Source: Podarcis melisellensis
Taxonomy: Eukaryota
DNA: 64,000 nt
Reading direction: 5' to 3' (one strand)
Assembly (NCBI GenBank): GCA_964234715.1
Contig: OZ174279.1
Positions within the stretch are counted from its first letter, which is position 1; every line of letters begins with the position of its first letter. The notes below the pieces were generated by a model. The model had not been told where the DNA came from and did no database searches. It was given only the letters and a program-made list of their open reading frames with translations. Positions 15,528 through 53,000 of the stretch are shown in pieces. Position numbers and translations under genes: made by a program.

Positions 15528-18500
15528 CTGAAATCAAAATGGAGAGAGACATTTAGAAAGGCTCCCCCAATTACAAGCTGCTGGCTTGCAGAACTGCACC
15601 TGGAACGAGGCACTAAGTGCACAAGGCAAGGGCTGCACACCACTGTGCTATAGCGACTTCAACCAAGGAGACCACACCTGTACAACTAAGGGAGCTGATC
15701 TATTGCAGTGGCAACTGCCACCATCACCATCATGGCAGCGTTTTTCTATCAAAAAAGGGACCAGATGGATGCCGAGCAGATGAAATACCGCACATGAACA
15801 GACCCATACAGGCCATACATTATCTTCTGCCCTGGTGTCCACAGTCAAGTCGCTCCACTGAGGCTTACCCACTATAACCAGGCAAGATAGGCAGCCTTTG
15901 CATCATTATTAACACTGCCACTAATTGGGCAGGTGAACAGGGCAACTCAACCGGCTCTTGCAAGACACCCTACAAACTAGGTTAGCACAAACCATTCTGT
16001 GCGCTCCCGAGCTCCGCAGACCTATAAAGTCAAAGCACTTATTTGGAACCATTTAAATGAAGGCAGTGCTGACACATCCCCTGCTCATCCAGGACGGTAG
16101 TCTAGGCCAGGAACCTGTGGCCCTCCAGCTGTCATTGGGACTCTAAAACTTCCCTCAGCACCAGCCAGCATGGCCAAACATCACAGATGAGGGGAGATGT
16201 GCTCCAACGTCTGAGTGCATCGTGCCAAGCAATCCTAGTCTAGGGAACACGGCGTTTTAAATGCCGAACTGCAACAAAACCAGAAAAGGTGCTCTGTCAC
16301 CGTTTATACCACTCAGGGTGAGGGCCTGGATGGGTGGAGGGTGTGGGGGAAAGATGTTAAGCTACTCAAAAGCCACAGAGTGAGAATCTGTTGGCACAGA
16401 ATGCGGCCCACTTTGTGTGATGGACAGAGAAGGAATGGTTGGGCTGCATTAAGTGGAAAAATCGGGAGGGAACTGCTGCTCAAACCACCGGTTGTTTATT
16501 CTGTTTCAATCTGGTTGAACGTTTTATTTACTTTTACCTAGGTGTTTGGTTAAATTGGAAATAATTTTGATGCTGTAGTTTTGCTTGTTTACCTTATGGT
16601 AGATTGTTAAATTGTTTCTTGGACCTGTTTATACGATTTTGTAATTTATGTATCTTGCCTCCCCCTTTTCCCGGTGACTTTTCCTATGACTTCTGCTCCC
16701 TGCTTTGGGACTGAACACATTCACTGAAGTGCGGGTAGAAATACTATAAATAAATAAAGCTAGAGTTTTACATTAGCACAGGTATACAATATCCCCCCTG
16801 TGATTTTAATATGTTACAATAAGCCCACATTGCACTTTTTAAATAGACATTATGAAAACATTGCTTAGATTTAGGTAGGTAGCCGTGTTGGTGTGACGCT
16901 ATATATATATATATATTGCTATATATATATATATTGTCCAGTAGCACCTTAGAGACCAACTAAGTTTGTTCTTGGTATGAGCTTCAGTGTGCATGCACAC
17001 TTCTTCAGATTTGTTAACTTTGGACATTCTTGCAAATACGTTCGTTATCCCAGTTACTGTTCCAGCTTACCTCCATGAAGAAGGACTGCTCGGCCATTCG
17101 TAGAAACTGCTGCCTTGGCAGTGCTTTCAGACAGGCCAAACAGCCACCCTCTTTCCACTTTCGTTAAGGATATTCAAGCACAAAGAGGGCAAAACATGCT
17201 TGAGGCATAGCTAAGCACAGCTCCTCTACCAACCTACAAAAGCTACTGTGGCACACAGGACGGAGTATTGAAGTTGTCAAAGTTCAGCATGTTCAAATCA
17301 CTCCCAGCTCCCCAGATATTGCAAGGACGGAAATCAGAATAACCTGTCTGACAAAAGTGCTTGTCAAATTAAAGGGGTGGGGAATCTGCAGCCCTCCTGA
17401 TGTTGTTAAGACCACGACTTCCACCATCCGTTGCTATTTGTCTCCAGCTCCCAGCCAGCACAGACAGCATCATCATTCTAGAGGGCCACACCAATATTTT
17501 AACGTGGGGTGGTTGTGGCATTATATTCCAAACAGTGATCTGAACCACTTAGCTGCTTCTCTGGTCACAGGTGTTTAACTACAGATTCATTTTCATAATA
17601 ATAATAATAATAATAATTTATTATTTATACCCCACCCATCTGGCTGAGTTTCCCCAGCCACTCTGGGCGGCTCCCAATCAGTGTTAAAAACAGTACAGCA
17701 TTACATATTAAAAACTTCCCTGAACAGGGCTGCCTTAAGATGTTTTCTGAATGTCAGGTAATTCTTTATCTCTTTGACATCTGATGGGAGGGCGTTCCAC
17801 AGGGCGGGCGCCACTACCGAGAAGGCCCTCTGTCTGGTTCCCTGTAGCCTCACTTCTCGCAATGACGGAACCGCCAGAAGGCCCTCGGCACTGGATCTCA
17901 GTGTCCGGGCTGAACGATGGGGGTGGAGACGCTCCTTCAGGTATACAGGACCGAGGCCGTTCAAGGTTAGCTAGGCAGGTTGGGATCTTTCTGTTCATTT
18001 AGTATTTTTGATGCAACAACCAAACATCAGAACCGAAACACCAGTACTAGATACCCGTGGTTCCGGTCTGTTAACGTTCCGTATGACTACAGTAAGCTAG
18101 TATACGACCACTGAGTGTAGAAGAATATATATCTGCAGCATTTACAGGCTATTGCACACAAAGGCATTGGGAGACTGTTCTATTTATTGGCTGCCCAACA
18201 AAAAGGAATCTTGAGGCACTGGAGTGGGGATGTTCTAAACTTTCTTAGAATGCCTTATCTTAATTGGCAACCCTTGCCCATTATTCTAGTAATATTATGG
18301 GTTGGCTCTTCTGTTTTCCACTTTGTTATACCTTGTGTGGATTGTACAGTGGTACCCCGGGTTACATACACTTCAGGTTACAGACGCTTCAGGTTACAGA
18401 CTCCGCTAACCCAGAAATAGTACCTTGGGTTAAGAACTTTGCTTCAGGATGAGAACAGAAATTGCGCGGCAGCAGCGGGAGGCCCCATTAGCTAAAGCGG

Positions 18501-36692: not shown

Positions 36693-36908
36693 GGGACACA
36701 GGTGGCGCTGTGGTCTAAACCACTGAGCCTCTTGGGCTTGCTGATCAGAAGGTTGGCAGTTCAAACCCCTGTGATGGAATGAGTTCCCATTGCTCTGTCC
36801 CAGCTCCTGCCAACCTAGCAGTTCAAAGGAACACCAGTGCAAAAAGATAAATAGGTACCACTGTGGTGGGAAGGTAAATGGCATTTCGGCGCACTGGCTT
36901 CTGCCACA
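36693..36908 (+). mobile_element. 5' half of a Sauria SINE, fused to BovB
   Basis: Aligns by eye to the first ~215 nt of the full SINE at 27532-27175. Confidence 0.85.
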
Positions 36909-39766
36909 AGTCCAATGCTGTAAAGAAAAATATTGCACAGGAACCTGGAATGTAAGAACCATGAACCTGGGTAAGTTGGAGGTGGTCAAAAATGAGATGG
37001 CAAGAATAAATATTGACATCCTGGGCATCAGTGAACTAAAATGGACGGGAATGGGTGAATTCAGTTCGGATGACCATCATATCTACTACTGTGGGCAAGA
37101 AACCCGTAAAAGAAATGGAGTGGCCCTCATAGTCAACAAAAGAGTGGCGAAAGCTGTACTGGGATGCAATCTCAAAAATGATAGAATGATCTCGATACGA
37201 ATCCAAGGCAGACCTTTTAACATCACAGTAATCCAAGTTTATGCACCAACTACTTGTGCTGAAGAAACTGAAATTGACCAATTCTATGAAGACTTACAAG
37301 ACCTTATAGAAGTGACACCAAAGAAGGATGTTCTTCTCATTATAGGGGATTGGAATGCTAAAGTAGGGAGTCAAGAGATAAAAGGAACAACTGGCAAGTT
37401 TGGCCTTGGAGATCAAAACGAAGCAGGGCAAAGGCTAATAGAGTTCTGTCAAGAGAACAAGCTGGTCATCACAAACACGCTTTTCCAACAACACAAGAGA
37501 CGACTCTACACATGGACATCACCAGATGGGCAGCATCGAAATCAGATTGATTATATTCTCTGCAGCCAAAGATGGAGAAGCTCTATACAGTCAGCAAAAA
37601 CAAGACCTGGAGCTGACTGTGGCTCAGATCATCAGCTTCTTATAGCAAAATTCAAGCTTAAACTGAAGAAAGTAGGAAAAACCACTGGGCCGGTAAGATA
37701 CAATCTAAGTCAAATCCCTTATGAATACACAGTGGAAGTGAGGAACAGGTTTAAGGATTTAGATTTGGTGGACAGAATGCCTGAAGAACTATGGATGGAG
37801 GCTCGCAACATTATACAGGAAGCAGCAACGAAAACCATCCCAATGAAAAGGAAACGCAAGAAAGCAAAGTGGCTGTCCAATGAGGCCTTACAAATAGCGG
37901 GGGAGAGAAGGCAAGCAAAATGCGAGGGAGATGGTGAAAGATACAGGAAATTGAATGCAGATTTCCAAAGAATAGCAAGGAGAGACAAGAAGACCTTCTT
38001 AAACGAACAGTGCAAAGAAATAGAGGAAAGCAATAGAATGGGAAGAACCAGAGATCTGTTCAAGAAAATTGGAGATATGAAAGGAACATTTCGTACAAAG
38101 ATTTCCATAATAAAGGACAAAAGTGGAAAGGACCTAACAGAAGCAGAAGACATCAAGAAGAGGTGGCAAGAATACACAGAGGAATTATACCAGAAAGAAA
38201 TGGATGTCTCGTATACCCCAGGTAGTGTGGTTGCTGACCTTGAGCCAGACATCCTGGAAAGTGAAGTCAAATGGGCCTTAGAAAGCACTGCAAATAACAA
38301 GGCCAGTGGAAGTGATGGTATTCCAGCTGAACTATTTAAAATTTTAAAAGATGATGCTATTAAGGTGCTACATTCAATATGCCAGCAAGTTTGGAAAACT
38401 CAGCAGTGGCCAGAAGATTGGAGAAGATCAGTCTACATCCCAATCCCAAAGAAGGGCAGTGCCAAAGAATGCTCCAACTACCGCACAATTGCACTCATTT
38501 CACACGCTAGCAAGGTTATGCTTAAAATTCTACACGGAAGGCTCAAGCAGTATGTGGACTGAGAACTCCCAGAAGTGCAAGCTGGATTTAGAAGAGGCAG
38601 AGGAACCAGAGACCAAATTGCAAACATGCGCTGGATTATGGAGAAAGCTAGAGAGTTCCAGAAAGACATCTACTTCTGCTTCATTGACTATGCAAAAGCC
38701 TTTGACTGTGTCAACCACGGCAAACTATGGCAAGTTCTTAAAGAAATGGGAGTGCCAGATCACCTCATCTGTCTCCTGAGAAATCTCTATGTGGGACAAG
38801 AAGCTACAGTTAGAACTGGATATGGAACAACTGATTGGTTCAAAATTGGGGAAGGAGTACGACAAGGCTGTATTTTGTCTCCCTGCTTATTTAACTTATA
38901 TGCAGCCTATCATGCGAAAGGCTGGGCTGGATGAATCCCTAGCCGGAATTAAGATTGCCGGAAGAAATATCAACAACCTCAGATATGCAGATGACACAAC
39001 CTTGATGGCAGAAAGTGAGGAGGAATTAAAGAACCTTTTAATGAGGGTGAAAGAGGAGAGTGCAAAATATGGTCTGAAGCTCAACATCAAAAAAACGAAG
39101 ATCATGGCCACTGGTCCCATCACCTCCTGGCAAATAGAAGGGGAAGAAATGGAGGTAGTGAGAGATTTTACTTTCTTGGGCTCAATGATCACTGCAGATG
39201 GTGACAGCAGCCACGAAATTAAAAGACGCCTGCTTCTTGGGAGAAGGGCAATGACAGGCCTAGACAGCATCTTGAGAAGTAGAGACATCACCTTGCCAAC
39301 AAAGGTTCGTATAGTTAAAGCTATGGTTTTCCCAGTAGTGATGTATGGAAGTGAGAGCTGGACCATAAAGAAGGCTGATCGCCGAAAAATTGATGCTTTT
39401 GAATTATGGTGCTGGAGGAGACTCTTGAGAGTCTCATGGACTGCAAGAAGATCAAACCTCTCCATTCTTAAGGAAATCAACCCTGAGTGCTCACTGGAAG
39501 GACAGATTGTGAAGCTGAGGCTCCAGTACTTTGGCCACCTCATGAGAAGAGAAGACTCCCTGGAGAAGACCCTGATGTTGGGAAAGATGGAGGGAACAAG
39601 GAGAAGGGGACGGCAGAGGACGAGATGGTTGGATAGTGTTTTCGAGGTTACCAGCATGAGTTTGACCAAACTGCGGGAGGCAGTGGAGGACAGAGGTGCC
39701 TGGCGTTCTCTGGTCCATGGGGTCACGAAGAGTCGGACACGACTAAACGACTAAACAACAACAACA
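36909..39766 (+). mobile_element. RTE-BovB LINE, near-complete endonuclease + reverse transcriptase ORF with one stop and one frameshift
   Basis: APE motifs GTWNVR, LGISE, GDWNAKVG, IDYIL, SDH; RT motifs FIDYAKAFD, GVRQGCILSP, YADD. In-frame TGA at 38560-38562 (likely CGA decay); ~2-nt deletion near 38906; (CAA)n tail. Confidence 0.96.
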
Positions 39767-45244: not shown

Positions 45245-45800
45245 TTCCAAATCCTATACAAGACAGTTTGAGCATATTACGTTGATCCTGGTCTGACTGC
45301 ACTGGCTACCAAATAGTTTCCGGGCCCAATTCCAAGTGCTAGTTCTGACCTATAAAGCCTTAAAGGCTCAGGACTGCAATACCTCAAGGACCACCTCATT
45401 CCATATAAACCTACCCAGACCTTGAGATCACCTTCTGAGGCCCTCCTTCATGTGCCTCTTCCTTGAGAGGTCTGGAGGGTGGCAACATGAGAGTGGGCCT
45501 TTTCTGCAGTGGCTCCCCATCTGTGGAATGCTCTCCCCAGGGAAGTTCGCCTGGCGCCTTCATTATACACCTTTGGGTGCCAGGCAAAAACATTCCTTTT
45601 TAACCAGGCATTTGGTTGATTTGATTGACATCCTATGCCCTTTTAAAATGTGGCTCTTTTTGGGGGGGGTGTTATTGGGTTGTGGTTTTTATTTTGGTTA
45701 TATATATTGTGGATTTATATGTTGATCTTGTTCTGTGAACTGCCCTGAGACCTCCGGGTATAGGGCAGTATATAAATTCTAATTCCAATTCCAATTCCAA
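45245..45800 (+). mobile_element. L2 LINE 3' fragment (second subfamily)
   Basis: LHWLP...FQVLVLTYKAL and AFSAVAP.LWNALP-type coding remnants; related copies at ~60160-60510 (-) and ~31330-31440 (-). Confidence 0.75.
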
Positions 45801-45885
45801 AATATACAAGCTCAATCCAAGAGGTGGAAAATAAACAAGAAGAAAACCCAAACTTAGTGAAGGGGAAATGACAGACATGTCCCAA

Positions 45886-46099
45886 CAAAAAAAATTTCTT
45901 CCAGTAGCACCTTAAAGACCAACTAAGTTAGTTCTTGGTATGAGCTTTCGTGTGCATGCACACTTCTTCAGATACACCATGTGCATGCACACGAAAGCTC
46001 ATACTAAGAACTAACTTAGTTGGTCTTTAAGGTGCTACTGGAAGAATTTTTGTTTTGTTTTGACTATGGCAGACCAACACGGCTACCTATCTGTAACTG
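45886..46099. mobile_element. Penelope-like element remnant with inverted (fold-back) structure and hammerhead motif
   Basis: ~70-bp near-perfect inverted arms; 13-bp TSD AGACATGTCCCAA (45873-45885, 46100-46112); same family as 16868-17010. Confidence 0.8.
45936..45979 (-). ncRNA. Minimal type-I hammerhead ribozyme motif
   Basis: Minus strand GUAU-CUGAAGA-A-GUGUG(CAUG)CACAC-GAA-AGCU-C^AUAC: conserved core, helix II, palindromic AGCU in place of helix III, helix I GUAU/AUAC. Confidence 0.7.
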
Positions 46100-49000
46100 A
46101 GACATGTCCCAAGTTTGCTTGAAAATGCCTCCCTTAGTCACCAGTCAAGGACTGTGCCAGCAACAAGGCCCACACACTGCCTGCAAGGGAAGCCAATGAG
46201 CTCACCATAATGGGGGACCCTCCTTCTGCATCACAACACACATGACACCTGAGATGATGTCCCTCCGGCAGCCTCCTGCTGCTGCCAGCCCTCAGGCATC
46301 CTTGCAATCTGACTCCCCTTCTGCTCCTTCATCCTAAGCATGGCTTCTCTGCACAAAACACAAAGGGAAGGGAAGCCCACAGTACCTACAGGAAGCCTGC
46401 ACAGCCTCCTGGGGGCTTAGGGTTCAAGACCCATCCTGAGAGAGAAAAGGCTCCTTTTCAACAAGAAGCCAAGTGAAAGAGGCTAGGTCTTTAGGGGTGC
46501 TTGTCCTGTTAGGGCCAATTCAGACATGCATGTTTGTGGTGGGTCATGTACTTGTCATGTGGCATGCTGTTAATCTGAATGCATCCCATGCAGGGAAAGA
46601 TCTAGAAGAAGATAGTGCCTTCTATTCATCAGAACTGAGAGATTACGAGGCTGGGCAGCCATTTTCTTCTTGAACTTAGAATTATTCATAGAAGGGTCCT
46701 CTGGCCCAACCCCCTAGAAATCTACCTTTCCATATTTGTTTTAAAGAAAGACGAGCAGGGTAGGAATGGGGCAAAACATTTATTTCCGTTTCGATTCTGA
46801 GTAGCAATTGGACATTATTCTTTTTGCCTTATTGAGGTATGTCGCCATGAAGCTGAAAGGAGCCAAGATTCCTAGTGGCTTCCTCCAAACTCTTGATGCT
46901 ATTTTAGTTATTATGGTTGACATAGCTCGATTTGATGTAGGAGAAAACTGGAGACGCCAATGCCTTCTCTATGGGGAGTGTTGCTTGGCACAGGATGGAG
47001 AACAGCTTTTGGGGGGATAACTTGGCAGTATTCCACACTTTTAAGAGTCTTCAGTCCCTTTCTCCAGCATGGTAAGATGCAGCTGGGTTTATTCGCTGTG
47101 AGCCAGGAGAAGCATTTGGTAAACTTGCTGGAACATTAACAGATTATTCTGCTTCAGAAGCTTTGTGAAACTTGAGGTCTGCAATGGTCCGATTACATTT
47201 TTGGAGGCGGAGGCAGCAGAGAGTTGCCTCCTGGGAAGGAGCAAAGTGGATTTTAAATATCTTCAGCATTCAAGGATTTTCTTTTAAACAAAATGCAGCT
47301 GTAGAGAGAAGGGCACCGTGAGGACAGCTCCCCTTCATTTTGACGAGGCTCACGCAAAGCAAACGTCTCAAAGGAGTTAAGGCAGATGGATTCAGAGCAG
47401 CTTGGCGGGTTGCAGCCGAGATCTGCAGAAAGATTCTGCACCAAATTTTACTAATGTACATGTGCTCCTGGAGAGAAGTTATTTTACCAGGGAAAACGGG
47501 GAGAGGCTATAACAGCTATAAGGTCCTAAATGTGGATGTCAGTACCTCATACTTCACATGAGGCTTAAGCTATTATGCAGTAGTTGAGATGGTAGAGTAT
47601 GCCCTTATCTTTCTAGTTATAAGGAATCACACATTTTCATCATGACCAGGTATGACATGTGCATCTTTGATTAGTCTTATTCTTAGGAGTCCAAACCGCT
47701 GAAATAAAAAAAGGGGGTATCTGGGGAGTGGGTGAGAAAGACAGCCTTTCTTCTCACTTTCCTTCCTTCAACTGGCCTGAAAGTAGAGCAATATACACAC
47801 ACACAGTAACAGCCAATCTGTTTTCCTTCCTCATCCAACAGCCATAGACATCTTGGTCTGTGCTGGATCACCAAGTGCTCCTGTGTGAAAACAGCTCAGC
47901 TAGGAACGTCCGTACAGGTGGCTGCTGAAAGCCTGTCTTGGGATTACGATGCAAGCAGAGAAAGATGCATTTTCAGCTTTGCCAGAGAGAGACCCTGTCT
48001 GCCTTGCAAAGAGGCTCCTCCTGCTGGCTTTGTAGGCTCTTGGGGGACTGAAGCGATGCTCTTCTGAGGCTGGCACTGTCTCTGCCTGTGAGCATCCTTG
48101 CTACCCATCGATTCAGCCTGTACATTGATAAAGAAACAGAATCAGTCTGTCCTCCCAGGAAACTAGCTATGCTGTAGGGCAATCCCAACCACGTATTAGC
48201 TAATTGTTGGTTATTTATTATTGTATTTTTACTGCACTTGTAGGGTTTTGTGCCTCAGGTACTAAAATAATTTGACCTGTCTTGGGTATCATGCACCTTC
48301 ACTGGGTGGCCTGGAGGGCAACATTTGCTGTTCCACTTCTGGCAGTAGAGTCTGCTGGCTGGTCATGTCATGCTGGGATTCCCTGAAACATATTCCTGTA
48401 TTGTCCACATGGGGAGCATAAAATCCTAACCTGCTTGTCAAGTGGACTTAATAATAATTATTATTTTAGTTAGTGTCAGGAGCAGGTGCCAAGAGCAGCT
48501 CAGCAATAAATCACACAATGTTGTGCAGCTAACTCTTTATTCAAGAAAAAAAGGTCGCCTCAAGAGGCCAGGCCTATTGAAACCGATAGGACTTGCTTCT
48601 GTAGGATGGAGCTGAATTTTTTTGAAAATCTAAAGGTTTCCCCAGCCAAGCTCACATGGATGCAGTGCTGCTGACAGAAAGAACAGTCGTTTTACCTCTC
48701 TAGGTTTGGAGTGAAATATACTGTTTTTCTTTTGGCCAGGCTGGGTAGGAGGAGAACGTGAGTTGTGGTCAGCATCTGCTTCCGCAACCCGCCTCGTACA
48801 TATCTCTTCCGGCTCACTCCGACGTCGTAAGAACCACTGCTGTCCAGGGCAAGGCAGGAGGGGAAACCTGAATCGGCAGCCCATCAAATTTCAAAGTGGT
48901 AGGTGGTAAGCTTCCTTGAACTCTCATAGCGCAGATAAAAATGAGAGCAGCTAAAAATGGGGAATTGGAGAAGAAGGCCCTGAACAGATCCATTTATATG

Positions 49001-51399: not shown

Positions 51400-53000
51400 C
51401 ATTGCATCGCGTGCCATCTTCTCAGCAGTCGGCCCCACCTAGCCGCATGTGAATAGTCCCCGCAGCGTCTGCAATACACCGCGTGGAATCCAGAAACGCG
51501 AACGCGTGAACCAGGCGCGGAGACGGAACGGCGCTCTGAGTTCCCAGGAGCGCGCAGTGCCGTCGGTGCACGTGCCCCAGGGTGCAACGTCGGCGACACG
51601 CGAGATCTATTCAGGGGTGGGGGGCAGGCAGCCAGCCCTGCCTTCGAAGGAGCCCTGCCCCTGGGGCCAGAGCGCGCGCCACGACCACGCCTCCGACGGT
51701 GCTCTCCGTCGAGGGACGCGGCTGCTTGCGCAGAGGGCTGCAGCCGCGCCGTCGCTGCCTCGAAACTTCCCGGCCGGACCTCGACCGGCTCGCGTGGGGC
51801 TGTCGCGTCCCGCTTGCGGCTGAGCCAATGGGCTGGGCTGTGTCGGAGCTCACACTGCCCCCTGCGGAGGCGGACCTCGGCGTCGAGCGGGAGCCGAGCG
51901 GACTATGCTAGAGCCCTCGGCGCCGGGGCAGCGGCGGGATCTGCGCGGGGATCGTGCTGGTGGCGGCGGGATCCCAGCCCGGGAGGGGGCGCGCGGCGGG
52001 GGTGGCTGGCGCCGAGGCAGAGGGAGAGCTCCCTGCCCGGGCAGGCGGAGCCCCTCGCCGCCGCCGCCAGAGCGCTGGGAGTCGCCGCGGCGGCGCGGAG
52101 AGGCGGCCATGCAGGGGGCTGGCTGCTGCTGGCTTGGTGGGCAGCCCTCCTCAATATGGTCCTCGACGTCCACGGCGCCGGCAGCTGCCCGCTCGTCTCC
52201 AGCCCGCGGCGCTGCTTCGCGCCCCACGCTCCCCGGCAGCTGGGCTCCGGCGGCGCGGCGGCGGCGATGATTTCGGGCTCGCTGCACCCGCCCCGCTTAG
52301 GGATAGGCGGCAAGCTCTTGCAAGGGGTCACGGCCAGCCCCGGGGGAGGCGGCCATGCGGGCAGCGGCAGCGGTAGCGGTAGCGGCAGCAGCAGCCCCAG
52401 CCCGGGCTTCGCGGACAACGACACGCAGTGCGGGGAGCAGATCCTGAGCTACGGCAACGTGGAGAAGGTGGTCATCGGGGCCGCGCTGTCGCTCATCACC
52501 CTGCTGACCATCGCCGGCAACTGCCTGGTGGTCATCTCCGTCTGCTTCGTCAAGAAGCTCCGGCAGCCCTCCAACTATCTCATCGTGTCGCTGGCGCTGG
52601 CCGACCTGTCGGTGGCCGTGGCCGTCATGCCCTTCGTCAGCGTCACCGACCTCATCGGCGGCGAGTGGATCTTCGGCAGCGTCTTCTGCAATGTCTTCAT
52701 CGCCATGGACGTGATGTGCTGCACTGCCTCCATCATGACCCTCTGCGTGATCAGCATCGACAGGTGAGCGGGCAGCGGGCGGCGCGCCGTCGAGGGAACC
52801 GGGGAGGGGGCTTCGCGTCGAAGCAGCTCAGGCTTGGGACGCTGGGTGTGTTTGTAAAACTTGCTCGCGGGACAGCCGACGGGTGCGTTCGCACGTGCGA
52901 GCGCCTCGGGAGGCTGCTGCAGTGTGGGAAGCAGCAGACCAGGTCACCGCTTCAGACGCCGCGTTTTTTTGGCGTGGATCGGCGTGCAGATGGGAAGATG
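51400..53000 (+). promoter_or_regulatory. HTR7 CpG island / promoter and 5'UTR
   Basis: Very high GC and CpG content; CCAAT at ~51825; GC-rich boxes. Confidence 0.85.
52156..52763 (+). CDS. HTR7: 5-hydroxytryptamine receptor 7, coding exon 1 (N-terminus to TM3/DR); gene continues beyond the window
   Basis: MVLDVHG...VTASP...CGEQILSYGNVEKVVIG...IAGNCLVVISVCFVKKLRQPSNYLIVSLALADLSVAVAVMPFVSVTDLIGG...CNVFIAMDVMCCTASIMTLCVISIDR; donor AG|gtgagc at 52763/52764. Confidence 0.97.

Follow-up and report, generated by a model that had tools for sequence, protein, structure and literature searches.

Penelope-like elements (PLEs) carry a hammerhead ribozyme in their terminal repeat, where it presumably cuts tandem transcripts into units, acting as a dimer formed through a palindromic helix III and aided by the protein of the element. 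The generic architecture of PLE insertions was reportedly laid out by Evgen'ev and Arkhipova in 2005. In such insertions the 5' end is strongly truncated, an inverted copy that is itself 5' truncated lies next to it, and a 30- to 40-bp tail is present at one end (Craig et al. 2021, PMC8557442), the tail being the segment between two reverse transcription start sites (PMC11167929, PMC8557442). The minimal hammerheads of PLEs are characterized by an unpaired nucleotide between A9 and G10.1, a G10.1-C11.1 pair, and palindromic positions 15.2-16.2, with a helix I of 4 to 5 bp and a helix II enlarged to 6 to 8 bp; they occur mostly alone in truncated elements and sometimes as opposite-strand pairs 100 to 700 bp apart (Cervera & de la Pena 2014, PMC4209133). 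Their cleavage as dimers is credited to Lunse et al. 2016, as that work is cited in PMC6765202. A comparable element in a lizard is Poseidon_Ac of Anolis carolinensis, for which both DNA strands were cleaved and extended in vitro and two internal reverse transcription start sites, with the tail between them, were located within an AC-rich region, about 90 nucleotides (nt) downstream of the hammerhead cleavage site; its hammerhead is protein assisted and dispensable for insertion (Frangieh et al. 2024, PMC11167929).

Here, we describe a 214-bp insert in a 64-kb window of Podarcis melisellensis DNA (the window is the whole stretch analyzed, 64,000 nt). The insert is an ordinary product of an already known element type and probably represents a dead-on-arrival product of PLE retrotransposition, from a family that is extremely abundant in this squamate genome.

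Results

The insert spans positions 45886 to 46099 and is flanked by two perfect copies (100% identical) of a 13-bp target site duplication, AGACATGTCCCAA, at 45873 to 45885 and 46100 to 46112. It consists of two inverted arms of 76 nt each (45887 to 45962 and 45980 to 46055; 96% complementary), which are separated by a 17-nt spacer (45963 to 45979), and of a unique 3' tail of 44 nt; a 214-bp insert between perfect 13-bp duplications, with two inverted arms of about 70 bp and a tail, had been proposed in the initial annotation, and this holds. The left part (45886 to 45977, minus strand) is an inverted, antisense copy of the family end that lacks the tail. Its U-rich tract is outermost and adjoins the duplication, followed by a complete hammerhead and then by the common 5' boundary of the family. 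On the right lies a sense copy (45980 to 46055, plus strand) that is 5' truncated within helix II of the hammerhead, at position 10.2, and comprises the 3' half of the hammerhead and the element body. Its first base, position 45980, coincides with that of TGTGCATGCACA, and its hammerhead remnant consists of helix II from 10.2, then GAAAGCUC, and then AUAC, with no CUGAAGA, in agreement with the earlier observation that the right arm begins inside the helix II palindrome. The antisense copy reaches about 15 nt further 5' than the sense copy (45963 to 45977, including CUGAAGA) and for this reason is the only one of the two with a complete minimal hammerhead. Between them lies a two-base filler, CA (45978 to 45979), which matches the family sequence of neither arm; comparison with the contigs of other family copies gave TG at the start of the corresponding sequence. 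The unpaired tail (46056 to 46099, plus strand) is present at the sense end only, carries the AC-rich sequence CAGACCAACACGGCUACC, and forms the 3' terminus of the family, so that the sense part, tail included, corresponds to approximately the last 120 nt of the element. Folding of the tail gave no significant structure (z = 0.3 to 0.5), and a candidate AC-rich stem-loop within it was accordingly discarded as lacking structural support. No tandem repeat of the unit was found at 45886 to 46099, which holds a single inverted unit.

Both arms carry a rare variant at mirror positions, namely, T at 45897 (C in 98% of the family depth) and A at 46045 (G in 95%), which argues for a single source of the two arms.

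In each of three DNA runs from related organisms (B, C, and F), one contig joins position 45872 directly to position 46100, thereby skipping exactly the insert and one copy of the duplication and leaving a single 13-bp copy; the flanks of these contigs diverge by 0.8 to 3.8% from the window. The initial annotation had called the insertion young and had proposed looking for the empty site in relatives, and the exact empty site in three of them shows that the insertion is genuine and young and that the 13 bp are a true duplication. The 214-bp insert is thus a real and recent retrotransposed insertion.

The insert belongs to an extremely abundant repeated family. The summed contig depth was 1.1 to 5.9 million over the insert compared to 6.3 to 41.7 on the single-copy flanks, and this ratio corresponds to approximately 1.4 to 1.8 × 10^5 copy equivalents. 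A second copy in the window (17010 to 16873, minus strand) is older, decayed, and not inverted, with the hammerhead in sense orientation together with the tail. Its core is mutated at G12 and A13 (CACAC-UGAA-GCUC), and an (AT)n microsatellite takes the place of the U-rich tract. This copy is possibly flanked by a 6-bp duplication (AAATCT); since the possible duplication overlaps the 5' end of the copy, that end is of no use for placing the 5' boundary of the family. The second copy runs from hammerhead through about 100 nt to an AC-rich 3' end in one direction, which fixes the orientation of the family. On the 5' side, contigs of other copies stop at 45975 or part from the insert after 45977, and on the 3' side they end at the U-rich tract (45884 to 45888) or at 46097 to 46099, with unrelated flanks beyond the latter. 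Exact-pattern scans of public metagenome contigs and of viral contigs returned no family copy, and a full-text literature search with strings of the family sequence returned no match. Within the 64-kb window, no open reading frame (ORF) for a PLE reverse transcriptase or a GIY-YIG endonuclease was found, and the only reverse transcriptase present is BovB-like, with an AP endonuclease.

Base-by-base reading and a structural descriptor both gave a minimal type I hammerhead motif on the minus strand at 45938 to 45975, as the initial annotation had it. In 5' to 3' order, the motif reads GUAU (45975 to 45972), the core CUGAAGA (45971 to 45965), an extra, bulged A (45964), the helix II strands GUGUG (45963 to 45959) and CACAC (45954 to 45950) around the loop CAUG (45958 to 45955), GAA (45949 to 45947), the palindromic AGCU of helix III (45946 to 45943), C17 (45942), and AUAC (45941 to 45938). 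All core positions are present (C3-U-G-A-N-G-A9, G12-A-A14, A15.1-U16.1, and H17; descriptor match from 45971 to 45942), a G10.1-C11.1 pair (G 45963 with C 45950) closes helix II, and the predicted cleavage site lies between 45942 and 45941, where it had been placed previously. Helix I has 4 bp, helix II has 5 bp with a 4-nt loop, and there is no defined loop 1; helix II and its loop together form one perfect 14-nt palindrome. The descriptor, which was written for this analysis, matched once on both strands of the window and never in 300 simulated windows, and for a narrower sequence pattern the chance expectation was 0.04 per window. Helices I and II are identical in the two copies readable in the window, and among the family variants listed, none at ≥10% falls within 45938 to 45975. 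The initial annotation had suggested a search with type I hammerhead models. The Rfam hammerhead models (types I, II, and III, HH9, and HH10) gave no match anywhere in the window at the gathering score, where no other Rfam family scored either, and none at an E value of ≤10 on stretches of 401 nt and 53 nt, for which the only hits were subthreshold ones to microRNA models that respond to long hairpins in general.

The predicted fold of a minus-strand transcript of the insert is one long hairpin (−151.4 kcal/mol; z = −20.7), while helices I and II folded in isolation reach only −6.8 kcal/mol. In modeled dimers, an intermolecular helix III of 4 bp could form through AGCU, and two helix II hairpins joined in this way, with helix I unpaired, would have −14.9 kcal/mol. 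A less probable possibility is that helix II, as a 14-nt palindrome, would also allow two copies to form a domain-swapped dimer, for which −33 kcal/mol was predicted compared to 2 × −8 kcal/mol for two monomers. The ribozyme at this locus is likely inert, because it stands alone as a monomer, the CUGANGA half is missing from the other arm, and a read-through transcript would bury the motif in the 76-bp hairpin. RNA reads showed no pile-up of ends at 45941/45942, which is weak evidence since the library was fragmented and the source organism lacks this insertion. That organism has the empty site, so the RNA run is silent on transcription of this locus; the reads did show other family copies transcribed on both strands inside other transcripts.

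Discussion

The initial annotation had assigned the insert to PLEs. This assignment agrees with the hallmarks of the hammerhead sequence and with the insertion layout; against it, neither a PLE reverse transcriptase nor a GIY-YIG ORF could be connected with any copy of the family in this analysis. With the generic PLE layout the insert shares the target site duplication (here, 13 bp), the 5' truncation, an adjacent 5'-truncated inverted copy at the 5' side, the tail at one end, and the hammerhead of the terminal repeat (PMC8557442). It differs in having neither an ORF nor a tandem partner and is among the smallest possible versions of that layout. In sequence, the motif agrees with PLE minimal hammerheads in its core and extra nucleotide, in the G10.1-C11.1 pair, and in a helix III reduced to 1 bp with the palindrome AGCU; its helix I of 4 bp lacks a defined loop 1, as theirs does. 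The bulged A after A9, which had been entered as a caveat, is no defect; it is a published hallmark of the PLE mini-hammerhead (PMC4209133). The departures from published PLE features are a helix II that would have 5 bp rather than the usual 6 to 8 bp, in a motif that no Rfam model matched; a tail of 44 nt rather than 30 to 40; and a target, AGACATGTCCCAA, that is not AT-rich, with putative nicks at C/A and A/G, neither of which is at an ATT motif.

The 214 bp entered at a staggered break, by which 13 bp were duplicated. We propose that the element RNA was reverse transcribed from both nicked DNA strands as primers, as happens with purified Anolis Poseidon protein in vitro. For the bottom strand, synthesis would have begun at the distal start site, past the AC-rich tail, and for the top strand at the proximal one, in the U-rich tract; the two cDNAs would then have been joined head to head with the 2-nt filler. 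The hammerhead is carried by the family as cargo. The cleavage and extension of both strands in the Poseidon_Ac system explain how head-to-head copies arise, and the two elements have the same layout, with a hammerhead, about 90 to 100 nt leading to the AC-rich region that ends the genomic copy, and an optional tail. The family differs from Poseidon_Ac in that its sequence has no similarity to the Poseidon_Ac consensus and in that the target at this insert is not AT-rich. The Poseidon_Ac ORF starts in helix II, whereas the AUG in loop II of the insert opens only 9 codons, and the frame that enters the insert's hammerhead from upstream ends at a stop 4 codons past the cut site. L1 twin priming is a further parallel, in that the same RNA is primed from the second DNA end as well, which leaves an inverted 5' segment within one target site duplication; however, the insert has no poly(A), its segments overlap by 76 nt instead of being merely adjacent, and the PLE enzymes are different (GIY-YIG endonuclease and telomerase-like reverse transcriptase).

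A possible but less probable reading is that the insert comes from a discrete, hammerhead-headed, nonautonomous retroposon of about 135 nt (SINE-like, or a "solo terminal repeat") that is copied in trans by PLE enzymes and is not the outcome of random truncation of an autonomous PLE; its fold-back would have the same origin as proposed above. The very high copy equivalent would suit such a retroposon, as would the 31 to 37 contigs per DNA run in which the family sequence stops precisely at 45975 and gives way to variable flanks. These ends are about as numerous as those at the 3' terminus at 46098/46099 (27 to 29), which hints at a fixed 5' end, and nonautonomous PLE derivatives have been reported in reptiles (bioRxiv 10.64898/2026.07.22.740005). 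The pile-up at 45975 to 45977 is partly forced, however, because the reference copy itself ends there, and a shared sequence runs on upstream of 45977 in the RNA reads and in some of the DNA contigs. The frame that stays open through the hammerhead to the stop at 45930 to 45928 would fit the end of an ORF. No polymerase III head was found, and a SINE derived from tRNA, 5S, or 7SL RNA was rejected on that ground and for want of a tRNA-like gene or an Rfam small-RNA match. Non-LTR retrozymes and the Schistosoma SM-alpha elements are likewise short, noncoding retroposons with type I hammerheads that probably borrow PLE enzymes, but retrozymes are tandem arrays with canonical hammerheads stabilized by loop-loop contacts and with circular RNAs (PMC7229834; PMC6765202), in contrast to the dispersed, inverted insert, which has a minimal ribozyme with no loop 1 and no tandem unit. 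We consider it rather unlikely that the family is a noncoding retroposon of about 135 nt that starts exactly at hammerhead helix I and reached about 10^5 copies via an internal PLE reverse transcription start near the 5' end of the RNA. If the discrete-retroposon reading were true, short ribozyme-plus-tail units and fold-back doubles would be the main product of the machinery and not a rare accident.

The start of the sense arm at the first base of TGTGCATGCACA bears on a claim of the initial annotation and on a second alternative. It had been supposed that the ribozyme's own helix II palindrome set the inversion breakpoint, and counting copies with the same inversion junction had been suggested. 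In the contigs of other copies, the inverted arm is joined at at least 12 different sense-arm positions (46015 to 46073); together with the filler and the fact that the arms do not share the palindrome, this speaks against such a role. The alternative, in which a 5'-truncated copy was inserted first and a later replication template switch at the 12- to 14-nt helix II palindrome produced the inverted duplicate, could draw on the same coincidence, palindromes being known switch points, but it is very unlikely. The inverted arm has 15 nt of family sequence that are absent from the sense arm and so was not copied from it, by which a template switch is close to refuted and a palindromic duplication after insertion was rejected. 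The outer end of the inverted arm also abuts the target site duplication exactly, and the two palindrome copies are separate, with spacer and filler between them. Least probable of all is an origin as a DNA transposon of the fold-back type (MITE) or as a gene for a hairpin RNA (microRNA [miRNA] or small interfering RNA precursor), for which a long, near-perfect hairpin and Rfam miRNA precursor matches (≤62 bits, against gathering scores of 43 to 211) could be adduced, but a MITE was rejected because 44 nt lie outside the right repeat, which is thus not terminal, and because the second family copy is not inverted, and a miRNA gene because the matches are generic for long stems and all below their gathering scores, the locus moreover being absent from three relatives and its flanks free of RNA reads.

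The PLE insertion described here is a natural example that can be dated cleanly: three relatives have the exact empty site, and both arms stem from one source. Its head-to-head, one-tailed layout is as predicted by the in vitro study of Anolis Poseidon from 2024, with two-strand priming and two internal start sites. It shows very recent activity of the retrotransposition machinery in this lineage. With about 10^5 copies, the family scatters perfect hairpins and ribozyme-like motifs over introns and intergenic DNA and will give rise to many look-alike findings in this genome; such copies are best regarded as routine PLE debris unless they show conservation or expression of their own.

A recent insertion with an exact empty site

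The 214 bp between the two identical copies of a 13-bp target-site duplication (AGACATGTCCCAA; 45873-45885 and 46100-46112) comprise two inverted arms of 76 nucleotides (nt) each (45887-45962 and 45980-46055; 96% complementary, with 17 nt between them) and an unpaired stretch at 46056-46099, and this layout of duplications, insert, and arms was already read correctly in the initial annotation. Both parts of the insert derive from one repeated family. Positions 45980-46099, on the right, carry it in sense, cut short at helix II position 10.2 of the hammerhead motif and closed by a 44-nt tail. Positions 45886-45977, on the left, carry it in antisense; this copy starts in the U-rich tract, at the duplication, and so lacks a tail. 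Its 5′ reach exceeds that of the sense copy by ∼15 nt and takes in the whole hammerhead; the filler CA (45978-45979), foreign to both arms, follows. A rare variant is present in both arms at mirror positions (T at 45897, where 98% of the family depth is C; A at 46045, where 95% is G), and the arms therefore have one source, most simply one RNA in one event. Later duplication of the sense arm cannot have given rise to the inverted arm, because the inverted arm includes sequence absent from the sense arm.

Logan contigs of three DNA runs (X2, X4, and X10) from three differently labelled, related organisms were aligned on 45600-46400. In each run, one contig joins 45872 straight to 46100 (X2 record 10, 723 nt; X4 record 18, 1,396 nt; X10 record 3, 722 nt), and the 227 nt missing from it equal the insert plus one 13-mer copy. 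These contigs are the empty site, exact in all three relatives; the initial annotation had proposed such a check in related lizards. Their flanks diverge from the window by ∼0.8% (X2), 3% (X4), and 3.8% (X10). The empty site proves the target-site duplication, means that the repeat did not arise through misassembly, and shows that the insertion postdates the split from these genomes or is polymorphic, the filled allele being known from the window alone.

A very large family and a second, decayed copy

Summed contig depth reached 1.1 to 5.9 million on the insert, versus 6.3 to 41.7 on unique flanks, a ratio of ∼1.4 to 1.8 × 10^5 in all three runs; this ratio is not a copy number and gives an order of magnitude only. 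The family is very large, and the ratio agrees with the presence of two copies in the 64-kb window. The other copy (17010-16873, minus strand) is non-inverted and gives the family orientation: hammerhead, ∼60-nt body, simple-sequence tract, and AC-rich end (…CCAACACGGCUACC…). Its hammerhead core is broken (CACAC-UGAA-GCUC, with G12 and A13 altered), and two ∼15-nt (AT)n runs (16898-16934) stand in place of its U-rich tract, changes that neutral decay would give. In this family, the simple-sequence tract joining body and tail looks like a variable microsatellite. No family copies were found in the public collections searched (metagenome and viral contigs).

A minimal hammerhead of the Penelope type

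On the minus strand, 45975 to 45938 reads GUAU / CUGAAGA / A / GUGUG-CAUG-CACAC / GAA / AGCU / C / AUAC. Base-by-base reading places C17 at 45942, with the predicted cut between 45942 and 45941, and the start of the right arm at 45980, helix II position 10.2, so that the CUGAAGA half is absent there; the initial annotation agrees on both points. A structural descriptor (core, optional bulge, G-C-closed helix II ≥4 bp, GAA, palindromic A..U helix III, H17, and helix I ≥3 bp), run over both strands, hit the window only at this site and had no hits in 300 simulated windows, and the chance expectation of a narrower sequence pattern was 0.04 per window. The covariance-model search that the initial annotation had suggested returned no match to the Rfam hammerhead models, either at gathering scores or at E ≤ 10; the sole Rfam matches were miRNA models, which were rejected as long-stem look-alikes, all under threshold. 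The hammerhead helices are identical among the family copies read and offer no variation to score for covariation.

Minimal hammerheads of Penelope-like elements (PLEs) share the conserved core, a conserved extra nucleotide located after position 9 and before 10.1, G10.1-C11.1, a palindromic 15.2-16.2, a short helix I (4 to 5 bp), and a long helix II (Cervera & de la Pena, PMC4209133). The insert has every one of these sequence traits, except that its helix II is 5 bp, and the extra A after A9, noted in the initial annotation as a caveat, is a family hallmark rather than a defect. Such motifs occur mostly as lone copies in truncated elements, some as opposite-strand pairs 100 to 700 bp apart, and their hosts include turtles and snakes (PMC4209133).

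Taken together, helix II and its loop are perfectly palindromic over 14 nt (GUGUGCAUGCACAC; 45950-45963, and also 45980-45992 and 16987-17000). Cofolding of two hammerheads favoured pairing of helix II between molecules over 14 bp, with the helix I strands exchanged (−33 versus 2 × −8 kcal/mol for the monomers), which in this model would provide a second dimerising route beside the AGCU helix III.

The fold-back matches known Penelope-like insertions

PLE insertions are marked by strong 5′ truncation, an adjacent inverted 5′-truncated copy on the 5′ side, and a 30- to 40-bp tail at one end only (Craig et al., PMC8557442). These hallmarks and the empty site support the main reading of the initial annotation, a young, non-coding Penelope-type insertion, folded back on itself and carrying a minimal hammerhead, and the insert belongs to a kind already well described in the literature. 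The purified Poseidon protein of Anolis carolinensis cleaves and extends both DNA strands, two internal start sites for reverse transcription lie in an AC-rich region, ∼90 nt 3′ of the point of hammerhead cleavage, and the tail is the segment between them; the Poseidon hammerhead is dispensable for insertion in vitro and cleaves only with protein present (Frangieh et al., PMC11167929). By analogy, the insert fits this scheme: the tailed sense arm would have begun at the distal start site and the tail-less antisense arm at the proximal one. Other family copies have their loose ends concentrated at these two points as well (45884-45888 and 46097-46099). The insert sequence itself is unrelated to the Poseidon_Ac consensus.

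No reverse transcriptase or GIY-YIG open reading frame (ORF) linked to the family was found in the window. Its only reverse transcriptase belongs to a BovB-like LINE at 36790-39754, whose ORFs encode an AP endonuclease (PF03372; E = 1.7e-16) and the reverse transcriptase (PF00078); this element is unrelated to the Penelope-type unit. Just upstream of the insertion lies a second very high-copy repeat (45600-45790), at up to 10^4-fold the depth of single-copy sequence, that looks like a SINE tail. Its last bases are ...GGGCAGTATATAAAT, an AATTCC microsatellite comes next, and its other copies go on with AATAAATAAA. About 6 kb downstream, in a GC-rich stretch (48 to 56 kb; 49 to 52% GC), ORF 51814-52767 has the first portion of a rhodopsin-type GPCR domain at its end (PF00001; E = 4e-26) and is probably a host gene exon.

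Inversion breakpoint and 5′ end

The proposal that the helix II palindrome set the inversion breakpoint was not borne out. Contigs of other copies join the inner end of the inverted arm (45964-45977) to at least 12 different sense positions (46015-46073), and in the insert the two palindrome copies are separate and filler stands between the arms. That the sense arm starts exactly at the palindrome may reflect chance (about 1 in 10) or an enzyme pause at the hairpin foot.

In each DNA run, 31 to 37 contigs stop exactly at 45975 and continue into unrelated flanks, a count similar to that at the 3′ terminus and inflated because the reference copy ends there too. Other contigs carry on for 12 shared bases upstream of helix I and then diverge. 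These patterns are a hint that the 5′ end is fixed immediately ahead of helix I and hence that the unit is discrete, short, and possibly non-autonomous. The shared upstream bases of the other copies (beyond 45975-45977) end in a pyrimidine run plus CAG, resembling a splice acceptor; helix I is also where the intron of Drosophila virilis Penelope ends (PMC4209133). An open frame crosses the hammerhead (VSEEVCMHTKAHTKN; 45928-45975, minus strand), with a stop at 45930-45928, 4 codons past the predicted cut. It may be the end of the ORF of the parent element, but it covers too few codons to be significant.

Function at this locus

An RNA run from an organism with the empty site showed that other family copies are transcribed, on both strands, within other transcripts, and 97% of reads extend into unlike sequence. 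Read ends did not pile up at the predicted cut, the reads being from other copies in an organism that has the empty site. For a minus-strand transcript of the unit, the predicted fold is one hairpin with a free energy of −151.4 kcal/mol (z = −20.7), against −6.8 kcal/mol for the hammerhead's own helices I and II, and the unit holds no second complete ribozyme for the dimer that such minimal motifs require according to the literature. On the basis of this folding model and the missing dimer partner, this copy is likely inert and its ribozyme the cargo of the family, in whose parent element the hammerhead would, as the literature has it, process tandem transcripts as a protein-assisted dimer.
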